Below are positions 7,178 to 17,034 of a stretch of DNA of 64,000 bases, in pieces. Made by a program: the position numbers and the translations under genes. The DNA lies in NCBI GenBank assembly GCA_038496445.1, contig JALMLS010000064.1:62001-126000 (forward strand), written 5' to 3'. The notes beneath the pieces were generated by a model. It had not been told where the DNA came from. It searched no databases and worked only from the letters and a program-made list of their open reading frames with translations. The DNA comes from Trichosphaerium sp. ATCC 40318 (taxonomy: Eukaryota; Protista; Tubulinea). The number at the start of each line of letters is the position of its first letter. Within the stretch, counting starts at the first letter, position 1.

Positions 7178-8781
7178 TCACTTGGAGAGCTTGACGAGTT
7201 TGTCGGCGGATACACCAGCGCACAACTCTTCGGTGAGATCAAAAGCGGAAACTTTTTTGCCTTCAACGTCAAAGTCTGGGTTATCAGCGAGTTTGCCGAC
7301 ACCATCTACGGAGACACCCTTGCTGACAAGGAGAGCACCAAAAGCGGTGTCTTTGTACTCCAAAGGTCCAAAAAATCTTGGGAGCTCAACCATACCTTCT
7401 AGAGGTCCAGCGGACATGTGCACCTAAGCAAATATATTTAGATGGTTTACATTTTGGCTAACGTACACCGTTGCAACCGGAGGATACTTCTTTGAGACCG
7501 ATTTTGTCCTTGTTTACCAAAAACAAATTACGAATGGAACCTAAGCAAACAACTGTTACGCAAACCAAAAAAAGGTAATATGCTGTATACCTTCGACAGC
7601 CTTGTTAGGGTTGGTGACACCAGCGAGTTTTTCTCTCAAATCTCCCCAAGCCATCTAATAATGTGTTAATGTGATGTTGAAAGAACGTGGAATTAATGGT
7701 GCTGGGTTTTTTGACAGCTGTTAACTGTTAAAGATAAACAGAGTATTCTGACAGCCTGCAGATACTGCTAAAGTTATACATTTGACAAAAACGCTAAAAC
7801 GCTCACCACTGAACGTTTGGTGTCCTTGGTACAGTGGAGATGTAAACCGGAAAAAAATGCATTTTGCATTGTGTTTTTTTTTTAATGCCAAAATTCAGTG
7901 CTGTGCGACAATCGCTGTCAGTATTGACCAATGCGCCAAGTGACAGCGAGAATTTTGGCATGTCCACAAAATTGTTTTCTTCAAAATAACGTACTTTTGA
8001 ACGGCATTCCAAAGCTACGATAGCATTACCAGGGGTAGTGTATGGTACCTGTGTAAAACTTTAGAGACCATAAAATTATTTCCTGTACAACGTACGAGTT
8101 GGTAAGCGTGGAAAGGGTTAAGAACAATGTATGGCTTTCCAGAAACCTACAGACGCGTTACAATACGCCATAAACACAAATGTTGTACCTTGATGGACAT
8201 GGCGTATGTACCGCCAGCCAAACGGGTGGTTCCAAGGTTGTCATTGACAACGCTCAATGAGAAAGGAGTGAAATCCTGATAGTCTAAGTTAGTGAAAGTG
8301 GTTTTTGTGCAAGTTGCATACAGGGTACAATTTCAAGAATTGGTGACCTCCCATAACTTCGGCGCCAGGTTGATCCTTGAGCATTTTGTCCAAGTTTTCC
8401 TTTGCTGACTATTCCAATAGCGTTAAAAATACGCAAAAACAAGTTGTACTGTACCTGTGTGATCACAGATGGGCCTTCTTTGCTGATTTGAGCAATAACA
8501 CCGTAGTGCTTTACCATGGCGTCGGTTTTGTCGAGGTAGCTACCGCCAATGACACGGATCGCACCAAATTCAACACCAGACTCTTTGAGTTTGTTCAAAC
8601 CAAGCTCCAAGGCGACCTTGAAATTAATACCGGCTTTGGTATCTGTTACTTCTGGTTTGAAGAAGAAGGTAAATTGGTTTACTGATGGATCAGCAGGGGC
8701 TTTGTATGGTACAACCCACTCGTCTTCGACAGACTTTGAGGTAACATTGGAGAAGGCCTTGAGAATTGCTTCGACGCTCAT
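7178..8781 (-). CDS. nucleoside-diphosphate-kinase-like protein, multi-exon
   Basis: FFFKPE, HYGVI, AGVTNPNKAVEGSIR and HMSAGPLEG motifs of the NDK fold. Biased codon usage suggests high expression. Confidence 0.7.
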
Positions 8782-11407: not shown

Positions 11408-12946
11408 ATGTACTTGAAGCCGCAGCGCCCCAAGTCGCTACTGACAAGGCGCACAATTACGATATTTGCTATTGTAACATGCTCCGTACTACTAGTAATC
11501 GCTTTGGTATACAACGGGGGCAAGAGTGCCAAAGAAAATCCTGTTATTAGCAACCAAGTGCGGTATTTGATGCAAAAACAATACCTCAAATACAGAGATG
11601 TGTCTACGTATCAAATTGGCCTTATAGCGGACCGCGACTCCGCTAGCAGAGTTTCTGACAGTAAAGGAAACAATAAATGGACGAGTGTTTTAAAAACAGG
11701 CAAACTAACTCGGGAAGTTGATGGCACGTACTCAGTCGAATGGGGAACAGACGTACGCGTCCTTTTTAGACTTTGTTTTCTATCATTTTTTTTTTCAATT
11801 CATAACACGTCGACAGTTTAAGCTCAAAGGCAAACTCAACGAAGGTGGGCGTGGCTTGGAGTTGTCTGAACTGATCAACTGGGATGGCATGTTACTCGCA
11901 CCCGATGACAGATCAGGCATTGTTTATGAGATTCTCGACCGAAACGCAGCGGCAGAAAAAGCAAATGTCGTACCTCGCTTCATTTTGCCAACAGGAAATG
12001 GAAACATGCAAAAAGGTTGTAAAGTGGAATGGGCGCTTGTATTCAACAACCAGTTATGGTTAGGCAGCATTGGAAAGGAGTGGACAGACCCAAAAGGAAA
12101 AGTCATCTCGGACGCGCCACTCTGGGTCAAGATTATAGGTACAACGCTCTAGTATTGTTCGTTGCGTATTGACAGTTAGATCATAGACAGACACGAAGCC
12201 AAAACAGAGCATAGAGACTTCTCGCATGTTTACCAACTCATGAGGAAGAAGGTTGGTGTAGAGTACCCTGGGTATGTTCAGATTTATTGTTTGTATTTAT
12301 ATCCTAGTAATTACTTTGAATTGATCCCTTTTGCAACAGGTACATGATATTTGAAGCTGGAACATTTTGGCATGCCAAACAAAAATTTGTTTTCGCTCCT
12401 AGAAAAGTATCAACGGTACTTACCTTATGTGCTCACAAGTTCGCCACTCATGCAACGCAATAGGAACCTTACGATGCTGACAAGGACGAGAGGCGAGGTA
12501 GTAATTTATTCTTGATTGTAGATCCATATGACTACACCAACATTGAGACAAAGACTATTGGTGTATCCACAAAAACTTGATTTTTTTTTAAGCCACAGCT
12601 CAACTTTTTACCCTTGACAATCTAAAGCAAAAGATCCCAGAGCGGGGTATTTCTTCGATCAAATTCATTCCTTTCCGTGACGAGGAAGTTGTGGTATTGA
12701 AAACGATGGAATTGTCGAACCCTGAAACGATAGAGACGTGTATCCTTCATGCTGTTTTACACCTTTTTTTTTTTTTTGAACTTGATGCCTTGACACGTAA
12801 CAGATATGGCCGTTTACAATATTGTCACTGGCAAAGTATTGATGGAGGAAACGCTGGTTGGCAAAGAAAAGTGCGTAGTTGAGACCTGTCAGCATTTTTT
12901 GAAGCTAATTCGGACTCTTAGGTTTGAAGGAGTGGAATTTTTGTAA
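11408..12946 (+). CDS. CANT1: calcium-activated nucleotidase / apyrase, type II membrane protein
   Basis: IADRD, GRGLELSEL, DDRSGIVY, KVEW, GSIGKEWT, RGISSIKF and terminal KFEGVEFL-stop after splicing. Confidence 0.93.
12563..12627 (+). other. U12-type (minor spliceosome) intron, GT-AG
   Basis: Donor GTATCCAC and branch CCCTTGAC ending 9 nt before the intron end. Removal restores the CANT1 frame. Confidence 0.7.
12740..12803 (+). other. U12-type intron, GT-AG
   Basis: Donor GTATCCTT and branch TGCCTTGAC close to the AG. Removal restores ETYMAVY. Confidence 0.88.
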
Positions 12947-13093
12947 TCACTACTTGCGCACACCATGTAATTAAATAAAAGTAGCGACCTGCTCTAAGAA
13001 AACCGTCGAAAATTTTGGGGTTTTACGACTTAATTTGCAATCCCTCCTTAAGTTCATTTCTTTTTTTTTGTATCCCTTTGCACCACCTCAAAA

Positions 13094-14120
13094 ATGACTG
13101 ACGATACTCGCGATTTGCCAATGTCCCTCGGGTACGCATTGAAATGCGGTGTTTAAACCGCCTTCTGCATTAAATCGCCAGTTTCTAACATTACCACCAA
13201 TTAGACTCAAAGTCCCAGAAGAGCTCCTCCGCAATGCTGTTGACACTATCTTCAAGTCTAAGGAGAGAAAGTTTCTAGAATCTGTTGATATTCAGATTCG
13301 TTTGAAGAACTACGACGCTAGCCGCGCCAGGCGTTTCAACGGAAGTTACGTACTTCCTCACACCGCCAGACCAAACCTTCGCGTTTGCATCATCACTGAC
13401 GCCAAAGATTTGGAAACCGCAAAGGCCAACGACCTTCCATGTATCACTATGGATGAGTTGAAAAAGTTCAACAAACAAAAGAAGCCTATCAAAAAGTGGG
13501 GTACGTGCTTCCACCGAGGTTAGGCGGGAGGTTGAACAACAGCCGACCCTGAGAAACCGCCCCTCGCCTAAACACACAAGTGTTCAGTGCATAGGTCGTG
13601 CGTTTTTATCAAAAAAAACCACGTTGGTCGTGTTGTCTCTCCCGCCTCTCTCGCTTTAATTTGCGAATTTGTGGTGGCTAACATGCATTCTTTCTTTATA
13701 GCCAAAAAGTACGATGCTTTCCTCGCCTCTGCTTCTTTGATCCGTATGATTCCTCGTGTTCTCGGACCACTATTGAACAAGATGGGCAAATTCCCAACAC
13801 CTTTGGGTAAAGACGACGACATGGTCAAAAAGGTCGCTGATCTTAAGGCTACCGTCAAATTTCAATTGAAAAAGGAAATGGGTTTGGGTGCCGCCGTAGG
13901 TAACCGCGAAATGACCACAGACCAAATTGTACGTTGTGGTTTTTTTTTTTTTTTTTTCGTGTTTTTGAAGCCTTTAGCACCGTCGCTAACCCTTTGTCTT
14001 TAGATTCAAAACACAGTCCTAACTGTAAACTTTTTGCTTGGTTTGTTGGCCAAGGGATGGCAAAACATTAGATCTGTTAACCTCAAATCTACCATGAGCG
14101 CCCCACAACGTATTTACTAA
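13094..14120 (+). CDS. RPL10A: 60S ribosomal protein L10a (uL1); exons 13094-13131, 13205-13500, 13702-13928, 14004-14120
   Basis: 678-nt spliced frame with [42 protein letters not shown] and KGWQNIRS. Confidence 0.97.
13515..13566 (+). promoter_or_regulatory. intronic uL1-binding rRNA-mimic element (candidate autoregulatory splicing element)
   Basis: TAGGCGGGAGGTT-loop-AGCCGACCCTGAGAAACCGCCC parallels the LSU rRNA L1-stalk H77/H78 sequence. Stems CGAGG/CCTCG, GGCGG/CCGCC and GGTT/AGCC. Confidence 0.8.
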
Positions 14121-14288
14121 TTGTGTGAATCTAATAAACGTTTTCGCCCTTGTACTTTACTACCAATTGCTGCCCCTTTGTCGTTAAAGTAGCTACTTGG
14201 CTTTTTGCAAGAAAAATTGAGTTTTGATCCTTGTAACGAGATCCTTGTAACGAAAAGGTTCTTTATTTGTTGTTGTATAAGTAAGCTA

Positions 14289-17034
14289 TTATCCGTTTAT
14301 TACGCATGCGGTAGGACCGCCAAAGACTTCACAATTGTTTGGTATGGCAGAATTTGATACGCAGGTGTCGGCACCGTTTCCACCATTTATTGCTTGGTTT
14401 CCATCAACCGTGGCGATGCAGTCACTGCCACCTCCTCCGTTTATGCTGGATTGTGCAGTGAAGCGTTCGGCTTGGATGTGATCTCCACCGCCGCCTCCGT
14501 TTAGTCTTATGAAAGTACTATCCCTAGTGACCATGCAGTCATTGCCACCGCCACCTTGAGAAAAAAAACGTATCAGTAATAATGAACAGAGGTAAAGTCG
14601 TAATTGATTGTTTGTACAGGGAGGAGTAACGACCAGTACAAAATTTCAAAAAAACAGTCGAACTGCAAACAAGAGACTTACCACTTATAACACCAGCAAA
14701 GGCATTGTCAACGAGTATATTGTCATTGCCAGAGCCACCATTAATGGTGGTAGGGAGTTCTGTGATACCTGTGCCCACAACGCGGATGCAATCTGGGTCA
14801 GCACCAGTAAGGATTGAGACACCAGTAGACTGCTCAGTGAGTACGATATCTCTACCACCACGCGTTTGGATCTCTCTGTATCTTACATTGGGACCAAGAT
14901 TGATGTAATCTTGACCGTTACCTGCGAAAAAGAAATAATGCATCAGTGGGGGTTAACGCTCGAGTAAAAATCCTTTAAATTTTTTTTTTTTTTTGTAAGA
15001 GGACGTACTGCCATAGTAATCTCCAATTACGGCTTCAGCACCTACGAGAATACAGTTTCTGCCATTGGTGAGTCGCATTAGACCTTCGACCGTTGCGCCA
15101 AAACCAATGGAGAGACACGTGTCACTCACTGTATTTATGATACCTCCTTGTATTACTACACCTGGTTCAATGGCAGTACAACGAGAGCTACTGAGGACAA
15201 GGTTTGCTAAACAGAGCGGATTAGCGGTCATACTAGTTAGAGAGATACACGTCGAAATTAAATTATATTTCAGATATAATTTGAAATTGTGTCTGCGATT
15301 ATTCAGTTGGGACTACGTACATGATCTAGCGCCAAAGCTAAGACAACCTCCTGCTTCCAACTCGCTAATACAAGCTTGACATGGATTAGAACGCACGGAG
15401 CAAGGGTTACTAATTTCTGATAAACCACTGCAAATATTGTCAGCAGGCTCAGTCGGTGTATTTGGGACTGGTGGCGGCGCCGTGGTTGGTGGATCTGTTG
15501 GAGCCTCACTGGTTGGCGATGGCGTGCTTGGTGGATCTGTTGGCGCAACTACGAATACAGTAAATCACACAAGTATGAATACAAACTTGGCAGTACCCGT
15601 TGGTGGTGGTTCTACTATCTCAATCGTAGCGCTTGCTTGTGGTGGCAAGCACGCTTGTGTATTTCCTCTCCTAAGGGCAGAATGTCAAGGTAGATACTCA
15701 GAGGCGAATGAGTTTCAACAAAAATAAAAAACAAGTAAGTTAGCTTACAAAGGCATGTCAAAATCGTGAGAAGCTACAGTTGACATATCCGCTAATGTGG
15801 CCACTGCTTGTGGATCGGTTATCATGCCCGGTGCTTAGGTACACAGTAAGTGGAGGGTTAGGACAAAAGGGTTGCAATAACCAAGTTGTATCAGATTTTA
15901 AATTATAACATACCTATTAGTTCTACCTGGGCCGTACAAGTCTCCGTGCCGTCCGCAGGAATAGTACCGTCGGCACTGAAGGTGTTCGTGGCCATGTCCA
16001 CAGTAAACTAATAGAGTGAGCTATGAACGAGGTGAAGTGGTTTTTCGCACCGAAGTACAGCTTGCCATACTGATTGCGACAAGGTCAGGCATAGTAGGGA
16101 AATCAAAATCCAACGAGGTAAGCGTAACATCACTTGGTGTAAGGTTTTCGCATTCAACAGTAAGAGTGTACATATTACCTAGCAATACAGCCGTTAACTA
16201 GCAAATACAACAATTGTCACGAAAAAAAAAATAAATCCCAAAAAAAAACACGTGCCAACAAAAAAAGGATCGTCCCCAACGAGTGTGTGTCGGCATACTA
16301 CTGGAGTTGTACAACACGTGTGGGATAACTCGATGCTTTCAGCCGTGGCAGTTGGTGAAAACCTTAGTTCTGTTTGTATTTGGACGACAGGCATGGTATT
16401 AGCGATTGGTAGACAAATGTCCTGTGGACCACCTGCTGTTACGCCAAACTCCACTATATCAGCCGCCATAGACAAGTCAGTTCGTGTTGATACTCTTGCA
16501 ACAAGTTCGACACCAGTTGCGCTTGCCACGCTTACGAGCCAGCAACCTACAACGTCGTTAGTTTTTTTTTTCAAAAAAGAAAATTGTTGGCGTCGTACTG
16601 CAACCAAGCGCTGCCAGGTCCACCGCTGGGGCAATAGGTAAAGGATCGGCGCCTCCAAGGTAGAATGCTGTACAAGAGGCCTCTACATTGTTCTCGACGA
16701 GAGTCGCTGTAGCGGTGAAGGAGCCGCCATTAATATCACACATCAGAGTGTTTGAGGCTGGCATGGCACTTGTTAAGAACAGCATACCGTTTAGTGATCG
16801 CTCAACCATGATAGCTTAACCAAAGTTAACCCACAAAGCGTTAAGAGTTCTTGTAAGAGTATGCGCACAAGTCATCATAGTAGCGTCGGTTTCAATGGTG
16901 AAGGGTTGTAACACTGAAGATACAGAGCCGTCCTGTTCATCGGGCATTATCATGTCCATCTGGTCATATACGTCTAGTATGAATTGAGAAGAACACAGGC
17001 CCACTAAAAGGCACACGAGAAATGTTGCGCGCAT
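14289..17034 (-). CDS. secreted protein with beta-rich domains, Pro/Thr linker and RTX-like GGxGxD repeats
   Basis: Signal peptide MRATFLVCLLVGLCSS, a Pro/Thr-rich linker and repeats NGGSGNDNI, NGGGGGDHI, NGGGGSDCI, NGGNGADTC. Confidence 0.75.

Follow-up and report, generated by a model that had tools for sequence, protein, structure and literature searches.

Can an intron sense the protein that its own gene encodes? This question is raised by the gene for ribosomal protein uL1 (RPL10A) of the marine amoeba Trichosphaerium sp. ATCC 40318, whose second intron contains a sequence closely resembling the rRNA site to which uL1 naturally binds, followed some distance downstream by a strand complementary to that sequence. 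We analyzed this gene within a contiguous 64-kb stretch of genomic DNA, hereafter the window, combining covariance models of rRNA, thermodynamic folding, assembled RNA evidence and comparison with other uL1 loci. Our analysis suggests that the mimic and the downstream strand that can erase it may together constitute a self-regulating splicing switch.

The uL1 gene and its over-long second intron

The gene spans window positions 13095-14120 on the plus strand, as do all the features located below. Its exon translations are 100% identical to a 225-aa protein of the same strain in EukProt/MMETSP0405 (P0003), which is a full-length Ribosomal_L1 protein (Pfam, 159 bits) and, when compared with solved uL1 chains, has a best match with an E value of 2e-67. 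In a search with the exon 3 region, matches were confined to proteins of the organism itself and of distant relatives, and the closest non-self proteins are at most 63% identical across most of exon 3. Spliced RNA contigs from three runs define three introns, at 13132-13204 (73 nt), 13501-13701 (201 nt) and 13929-14003 (75 nt). All three start with a GTACG(T/C) donor and carry a CTAAC branch motif 14-20 nt upstream of the acceptor.

Exon 2 (13205-13500) ends with KKPIKKW and the first base of an Ala codon, as seen in spliced contigs X2, X4 and X7, and the joint 13500/13702 that connects it to exon 3 (13702-13928) was recovered in three runs. Between them, intron 2 opens with the 5' splice site GTACGT (13501-13506), continues to GCTAAC and closes with TAG. 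Its branch-point motif, GGCTAAC, occupies 13676-13682, with the branch A at 13681, and CTAAC is similarly placed in the three confirmed introns. Intron 2 is about 2.7 times as long as introns 1 and 3, and the distance from its 5' splice site to its branch point is 180 nt, compared with 56 nt in intron 1 and 60 nt in intron 3. It is thus over-long relative to its neighbors, but the CTAAC core is identical in all three. An in-frame TAG at 13521-13523 ends the reading frame (ORF 13149-13523) in any transcript that retains intron 2 or is spliced from a donor farther downstream. A protein search with a 126-aa read-through ORF returned one distant fragment.

Intron 2 carries a near-complete copy of the rRNA L1 stalk

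The L1 stalk of the large-subunit rRNA, with its H76/H77/H78 core, is the natural binding site of uL1. A complete sequence counterpart of this stalk lies at 13515-13566, starting 14 nt past the 5' splice site. It begins with an H76-like helix of 5 bp (CGAGG 13515-19 / CCTCG 13562-66) and a TTA junction, from which an H77-like helix extends (GGCGG 13523-27 / CCGCC 13557-61). The 5' strand of the latter is followed by GA (13528-29) and, directly after it, by an H78-like hairpin at 13530-44 (GGUUG AACAA CAGCC). The 12-nt linker GACCCTGAGAAA (13545-56), with its UGARA-A pattern, then precedes the H77 3' strand.

The correspondence to rRNA is detailed. The intron reads GGCGG-GA-(GGUUG AACAA CAGCC)-GACCCUGAGAAA-CCGCC at 13523-13561, and E. 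coli 23S rRNA reads GGUGG-GA-(H78)-GACCUUGAAAUA-CCACC at 2120-2178. Helix length, the GA and the linker length of 12 nt are equal in the two, and 9 of the 12 linker bases are identical. H77 and GA match E. coli 2120-2126, with a compensatory U-A to C-G change in the helix and with the GGGAG core present, and the H76-like helix stacks directly on the 3' side, as in rRNA. The linker deviates at position 11, where the mimic has an A and rRNAs mostly have C or U.

For a systematic comparison, we scanned genomes with a pattern outside the stalk and fetched 120 rRNA loci, among which 89 distinct L1 stalks of bacterial, archaeal and eukaryote-type origin show exactly the layout of the mimic, with an equal linker length. 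From these we built two covariance models, both without the intron: R1, from 18 short-H78 stalks including eukaryote-type ones, and R2, from 40 bacterial and archaeal stalks. Both models matched positions 13520-13564 on the plus strand, R1 with 31.2 bits (E 1.4e-8) and R2 with 27.4 bits (E 4.4e-6), and this was the sole significant match of either model on both strands of the window (128 kb searched). The mimic matches all 15 invariant columns of the short-H78 rRNA alignment. Folded in isolation, its 52 nt adopt the H76/H77/H78 architecture as the minimum free energy (MFE) structure, at -19.4 kcal/mol (z -2.6).

The premise of the first-pass annotation, that intron 2 holds an L1-stalk mimic, is therefore upheld by two independent rRNA covariance models, by the invariant columns and by the stand-alone fold. 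The mimic is established at the level of sequence, and uL1 would be expected to bind it. It sits within the pre-mRNA of uL1 itself and is found in an assembled transcript (L028, discussed below). Mutagenesis of the yeast RPL1B 5' UTR has shown the GGGAG core to be needed for Rpl1 feedback (PMC7732827). Taken as a whole, we consider it likely that the mimic is a functional uL1 feedback site.

A downstream strand complementary to the mimic

The second element is a strand at 13626-13653, GGTCG TGTTGT CT CTCCCGCCT CT CTCG, which pairs with 13516-13548 and to which we refer as the anti-strand. The core of the pairing joins AGGCGGGAG (13522-13530) to CTCCCGCCT (13639-13647), a perfect 9-nt inverted repeat that was also recovered in a repeat search. 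Further pairs form between ACAACA (13536-41) and TGTTGT (13631-36), between CGACC (13544-48) and GGTCG (13626-30), and between CGAG and CTCG. Finally, the outer zipper arms CCACC (13511-15) and GGTGG (13673-77) extend the stem up to the branch motif GCTAAC (13677-82), which GGTGG adjoins. Every pairing segment named by the first-pass annotation lies exactly where it had been placed and is part of the RNAfold MFE structure, and the outer pairs, which had been said to reach the branch point, are present in both the MFE structure and the ensemble.

The resulting long hairpin is the MFE structure of intron 2 (13501-13701), at -64.6 kcal/mol. In 200 dinucleotide shuffles the mean was -49.2 kcal/mol (z -3.70) and none was as stable. 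Pair probabilities are 0.99-1.0 for 13523-30 with 13639-46 and 0.8-0.9 for the other arms, with 0.63 for the outer CCACC/GGTGG. Local hairpins accompany the long stem: one at 13566-13590 within its loop (probability 0.84-0.95), one at 13597-13623 that includes the donor-like GTGCGT at 13599-13604 (about 0.96), and a small one at 13651-13666 between the anti-strand and the outer arm (0.83-0.99). Introns 1 and 3 have no significant structure (z -1.05 and -0.24), and the same is true of the intron at the equal codon position in a distant relative, locus L001 (z +0.42).

The predicted duplex between the 5' arm and the downstream segment amounts to -40.0 kcal/mol, a value reached by 4 of 2000 dinucleotide shuffles and by 4 of 2368 genomic segments. 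Of these four segments, the strongest two (about -85) presumably represent the arm's own antisense, and the remaining two may span the intron 2 locus itself. The complementarity of the anti-strand is thus beyond chance, moderately so, with shuffle p-values (0.002-0.007) that are post hoc, which counts against building a regulatory model on them. The fold of the intron also carries no strand-specific signal of selection at the RNA level: the minus strand folds better than the plus strand (-74.0, z -4.96). Since it does so, and since the pairs are almost exclusively Watson-Crick, the stability statistic does not separate an RNA design from an inverted repeat in DNA.

Two mutually exclusive folds

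The L1 fold and the zipped hairpin share nucleotides 13516-13548. When the L1 fold was enforced on intron 2, the free energy rose from the -64.6 kcal/mol of the free MFE to -52.9 kcal/mol, a penalty of 11.7 kcal/mol that 7 of 1000 shuffles of 13570-13675 reached, none of them matching the overall stability. We then computed ensembles for nascent transcripts of increasing length. For 3' ends between 13566 and 13635, the probability of the L1 fold is 0.3-0.97, and it competes only with a nearby register; from 13645 onward it is 0.000, and that of the zipper is 1.000. The nascent ensembles and the energy penalty together indicate that the folds are mutually exclusive, as the first-pass annotation had proposed, and that the competitor wins decisively at equilibrium.

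The same annotation had described the intron as a two-state structure. The two exclusive folds are recovered in silico; a balanced equilibrium between them is not, since the mimic fold is essentially unpopulated once the intron is complete. Any switch would consequently have to be kinetic, that is, co-transcriptional, and in these models the early fold would be open to capture by a protein for only about 80 nt of transcription. In this restricted form, a two-state and probably kinetic design is supported by the predicted folds.

A further effect attributed to the long hairpin was to bring the normal donor close to the branch point. In the MFE structure and the ensemble it does so, with a path of 8 steps in silico compared with 174 nt along the linear sequence. 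The juxtaposition is not specific to that state, however: when the L1 fold was imposed, the outer CCAC/GUGG helix remained closed in the best predicted structure, and the 5' splice site remained paired with the branch region. As both the outer helix and a short path between 5' splice site and branch point are possible alongside the L1 fold, loss of juxtaposition on its formation is not clear-cut, and the modeled difference between the states would be one of stability rather than topology.

A proposed kinetic switch in splicing

These results lead us to propose that intron 2 may serve as a feedback sensor for free uL1 that operates through two competing RNA folds, a reading to which we assign a probability of roughly 0.45. 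The analysis establishes the gene, its introns, the statistical match of the mimic, both folds with their energies and a transcript that keeps intron 2; uL1 binding, the direction of its effect and any role of the anti-strand are inferred. The mimic (13515-13566), starting 14 nt after the 5' splice site, would fold first and reproduce the H76/H77/H78 elements of the L1 stalk. About 80 nt later, the anti-strand (13626-13653) and GGTGG (13673-77) would emerge and invade the 5' half of the mimic fold. The zipped long hairpin, predicted to be 11.7 kcal/mol more stable, would destroy the uL1 site and shorten the 180-nt distance between 5' splice site and branch point to a few nucleotides. With free uL1 scarce, the zipper would form and the over-long intron would be spliced. 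With uL1 in excess, the protein would capture the nascent mimic and block strand invasion, and perhaps also the nearby 5' splice site; intron 2 would then be retained, and the in-frame TAG at 13521 would render the transcript unproductive.

Whether the anti-strand belongs to the mechanism, as one half of a kinetic two-state switch, is in our estimate a matter of slightly less than even odds. We put forward a little more tentatively the complete proposal, namely an independently evolved, kinetic, protein-sensing splicing switch in Amoebozoa in which capture within a window of about 80 nt would lead to retention and a premature stop. Several observations weigh against the sensor. With realistic concentrations of free protein, binding could not overcome an energy gap of 11.7 kcal/mol at equilibrium, and the model therefore relies on co-transcriptional kinetics that are unproven. 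Because the outer helix and the pairing of 5' splice site and branch region persist with the L1 fold, the states may not differ in juxtaposition. Moreover, the 5' splice site is predicted to be paired with the branch site in both states, and the zipper could be inhibitory rather than enhancing.

The strongest competing explanation retains the mimic as a real uL1 feedback site and dispenses with the competition: bound uL1 would block the spliceosome directly, and the anti-strand would be a zipper that compacts the intron or an incidental inverted repeat. Yeast RPL30 provides a model for this, as L30 directly blocks spliceosome assembly. Such a block would suit the position of the mimic, 14 nt from the 5' splice site, and the statistics, which are far stronger for the mimic (E 1e-8) than for the anti-strand (p 0.002-0.007, post hoc). 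It is also favored by the persistence of the outer helix under an enforced L1 fold, by a minus strand that folds as well or better, and by the frequent occurrence of zipper stems among the long introns of yeast (PMC12311795). What speaks against it is the placement of the anti-strand, which falls exactly on the half of the mimic responsible for recognition (the 5' strand of H77, GGGAG, H78 and the linker's GACC), and not on some other stretch of the 5' region, and which, left alone, abolishes the mimic fold completely. As the anti-strand by itself eliminates the binding site, some interplay with uL1 binding is hard to avoid, and we regard a direct block with a bystander anti-strand as rather unlikely, though as the most serious competitor of the kinetic sensor.

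Transcripts show canonical splicing and intron retention

We next examined the RNA evidence, which consists of assembled contigs (Logan) and transcript assemblies and so speaks to the existence of isoforms, their ratios lying outside its reach. Two outcomes for intron 2 occur in the contigs, the canonical 13500/13702 joint and full retention. The latter is represented by L028, a transcript contig from JGI that keeps the whole of intron 2 at 100% identity, with introns 1 and 3 excised precisely. The reading frame of L028 ends within the mimic, at the TAG at 13521-23. The first-pass annotation had instead envisaged unproductive splicing at an alternative donor. This part of the proposal did not hold: no contig uses such a donor, and a transcript with full retention of intron 2 was found in its place. 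L028 fits inhibition of splicing better than a switch of donors, but one assembled isoform is weak evidence, for the kinetic sensor as well, and assemblies often contain pre-mRNA.

According to the donor-switch explanation, capture by uL1 would divert splicing from 13501 to an internal donor, adding the TAG to an extended exon and exposing the transcript to NMD. The best candidate, and the sole good internal donor-like site, is GTGCGT at 13599-13604. Its use would give an intron of 103 nt, closer than 201 nt to the 73-75 nt of the neighboring introns; both the mimic and the TAG fall in the interval between the donors; the relative L001 has a GTGCGC donor at the equal intron position; and a precedent exists in C. 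elegans rpl-1/L10a (PMC4937301). Nevertheless, no joint from this or any other internal donor is present in the contigs of four runs or in two transcript assemblies, an absence that is not proof, as contigs can miss rare isoforms. In addition, the isoform that was assembled carries the identical premature stop by way of retention, and GTGCGT is buried in its local hairpin with a probability of about 0.96 in every state. An alternative-donor outcome, and with it a uL1-driven donor switch, thus appears quite improbable.

The element is confined to Trichosphaerium among the loci sampled

The mimic is absent from 30 other uL1 loci, including two with an intron at the equal codon position (L001 and L151), a distribution that argues against the sensor model. 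A metagenome scan with exon 2 recovered 26 uL1 loci, all at most 55% identical and none with the mimic, which L150 and L151 likewise lack. No strain variants of the intron-spanning ORFs turned up in a cluster look-up, and a survey of GTAMGT-to-CTAAC distances across the window was too noisy to provide a distribution of intron lengths. Run X7 does contain mRNAs of the uL1 gene that differ mostly at third codon positions, some of the contigs being 90-99% alike, so a relative at a suitable distance exists.

We also asked whether the element belongs to a known class. Rfam searches of 12500-14700 and 13505-13585, with E values up to 10, produced chance matches only (CRISPR-DR15, mir-1188, GlsR8 and Rhino_CRE). 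A known RNA hosted by the intron was rejected on this basis, there being no snoRNA, riboswitch or LSU match in the Rfam scans. Membership in a riboswitch class was similarly discarded, with no Rfam family significant on the intron and a protein as the proposed ligand. As for an origin from a MITE or other repeat, the 5' arm has no comparable pairing partner in the window apart from its own locus.

A further explanation is that the element is a relic, a 45-nt rRNA-like piece with a partial inverted copy that arose, for example, as a captured rDNA fragment or hairpin insertion without regulatory function and that would be tolerated because the hairpin keeps the intron spliceable; we consider this account quite improbable, for although the element is lineage-restricted as far as sampled, its palindrome is symmetric at the DNA level (as noted above, a DNA inverted repeat is equally compatible with the structure statistic, the minus strand reaching -74.0) and intron 2 is about 125 nt longer than its neighbors, as expected from an insertion, a chance L1-stalk look-alike in the gene of the L1-stalk-binding protein is very unlikely (the sole match in 128 kb falls on a 201-nt target), the mimic is not a plain rDNA copy of any sampled stalk, having a remodeled H78 and H76 junction with the 15 invariant positions kept, and no further copy of the arms exists in the window.

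Relation to known autoregulatory systems

Feedback by uL1 through a mimic of rRNA H77/H78 has been described for the bacterial L11 operon, the archaeal L1 operon and the 5' UTR of yeast RPL1B (Roy et al. 2020, PMC7732827). The Trichosphaerium element shares with these sites the uL1 family, the GGGAG motif, two stacked helices, the asymmetric loop and a location in the protein's own transcript. Those sites are found in 5' leaders and control translation, whereas the Trichosphaerium site is intronic and would influence splicing. It is also the more complete mimic, with an H76-like helix, a linker of the rRNA length of 12 nt and the 15 invariant columns, and it is accompanied by a competitor strand, which is not described for the RPL1B, L11-operon and L1-operon sites.

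Metazoan L10a genes (C. elegans rpl-1 and vertebrate RPL10A) are regulated by alternative splicing coupled to NMD (AS-NMD) through the L10ARE, an element flanked by a pair of 5' splice sites (Takei et al. 2016, PMC4937301). Its authors describe it as bearing no relation to the L1 stalk, either in sequence or in predicted structure. Metazoan L10a and the Trichosphaerium gene both give rise to an unproductive isoform with a premature stop. They differ in that the L10ARE is not L1-stalk-like and the Trichosphaerium element is an L1-stalk copy, and in that the metazoan outcome is a switch of donors, whereas intron retention is the only unproductive outcome seen in the Trichosphaerium contigs.

A comparison can also be drawn with the kinetic riboswitches and attenuators of bacteria, in which a segment A pairs with either B or C and a ligand locks the early fold before the competitor has been made. 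The Trichosphaerium intron resembles them in its three segments, in a logic set by the order of transcription and in a ligand that would lock the early fold. Unlike them, the proposed switch has a protein as its ligand and splicing as its output, and it belongs to no riboswitch class.

The closest parallel is yeast RPL7B, in which a zipper-stem splicing enhancer is mutually exclusive with the structure bound by the ribosomal protein, an arrangement demonstrated experimentally and called novel in 2025 (PMC12311795). In both RPL7B and Trichosphaerium, the structure that excludes the zipper is the one bound by the ribosomal protein that the gene encodes (predicted binding in the present case), and an excess of the protein is proposed to favor this structure and repress splicing. 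Two features of the RPL7B type recur here in silico, in that a stem formed by 13511-13548 and 13626-13677 joins the 5' splice site to the branch point and the folds are exclusive, and even the branch-point motifs are similar (UGCUAAC in RPL7B, GGCUAAC in Trichosphaerium). RPL7B, however, encodes uL30 and belongs to fungi, whereas the present element concerns uL1 and Amoebozoa. The RPL7B binding structure is conserved across many yeasts and was tested by mutagenesis and binding, whereas the Trichosphaerium element is known from one genome and from predicted folds. Its binding structure, unlike that of RPL7B, is an obvious copy of rRNA.

This parallel qualifies the novelty that the first-pass annotation had seen in an antisense competitor strand. 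For uL1, no such strand is described in the literature that we searched; an equal logic has been published for RPL7B (PMC12311795), and the mechanism as such is therefore known. What the Trichosphaerium case adds, in Amoebozoa, is an intronic location for the uL1 rRNA mimic and its combination with a competitor of the RPL7B type. Resting on one genome and on thermodynamic prediction, it is a clean, testable and probably convergent example of this logic.

If the proposal is correct, this would be the first uL1 rRNA mimic to act from an intron, and the ancient recognition of RNA by uL1 would have been recruited again, now for the control of splicing in an amoebozoan intron. It would likewise represent a second, convergent case of the RPL7B type, in which a protein inhibits a structural splicing enhancer. 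At about 170 nt, the element is small and well defined, with clear disrupting and compensatory mutations, and would offer a convenient model for co-transcriptional, protein-driven RNA switching.

Intron position and L1-stalk-like elements

Intron 2 of the Trichosphaerium uL1 gene (13501-13701), which carries the H76/H77/H78-like L1-stalk mimic at 13515-13566, has matching introns in the uL1 genes of two distant relatives (47-55% identity). In both loci, L001 (377-511) and L151 (about 220-256), the intron follows KKW in phase 1, at exactly the same codon position as in Trichosphaerium. Neither of these two introns contained the L1-stalk mimic or significant structure. We infer from these sequences that the position of uL1 intron 2 is old and that the L1-stalk element is lineage-specific.

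Elsewhere in the window, a covariance model built from rRNA L1 stalks gave a partial match at 8604-8624 (13.2 bits, E 0.06), comprising only an H78-like hairpin and the GACCUUGAAAU linker and lacking H77; this match is probably due to chance. A genome scan with an rRNA pattern from outside the stalk found short-H78 LSU rRNA of the eukaryote type on many contigs that the genome collection lists under bacterial genomes or MAGs (among L030-L149, for example L043, L045, L053, L066, L071 and L079). The contigs look like eukaryotic contaminants of the assemblies that contain them.

Variant sequences and possible rearranged copies of the uL1 gene

Sequencing run X15, of unknown kind and with 5.4 million letters read, yielded a 933-nt uL1 contig with introns 1 and 2 unspliced, in which the 62 nt corresponding to 13447-13508 (ends CT..GC) are missing; the gap runs from the 3′ part of exon 2 across the 5′ splice site to the eighth nucleotide of intron 2. 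This contig could represent a deleted allele, a pseudogene copy, or an assembly artefact. The transcript encoding P0014, a 293-aa protein from the MMETSP0405 assembly, carries two in-frame tandem copies of 13687-13890, which comprises the 3′-terminal 15 nt of intron 2 and most of exon 3. No canonical splice signals were found at the join of the two copies, and the doubling may reflect template switching, an assembly artefact, or a circular or duplicated RNA.

Intron 3 includes an unbroken run of 19 T (13940-13958), and 13930-13968 was passed over as a repeat when the run contigs were compared with the window. Shortly 3′ of the uL1 stop codon, the 14-nt unit GATCCTTGTAACGA occurs twice in tandem (14219-14246), whereas the contig from run X2 has a single copy, so this repeat is a length polymorphism between sources. 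Run X7, which bears another organism label, contained two more mRNA variants spanning exons 2-3 (13264-13928), with most of the differences at third codon positions; among the variant contigs, some are 90-99% alike and two fall below 90%. These further variants show that there are related lineages or diverged copies of the uL1 gene, which could be a source for comparing intron 2.
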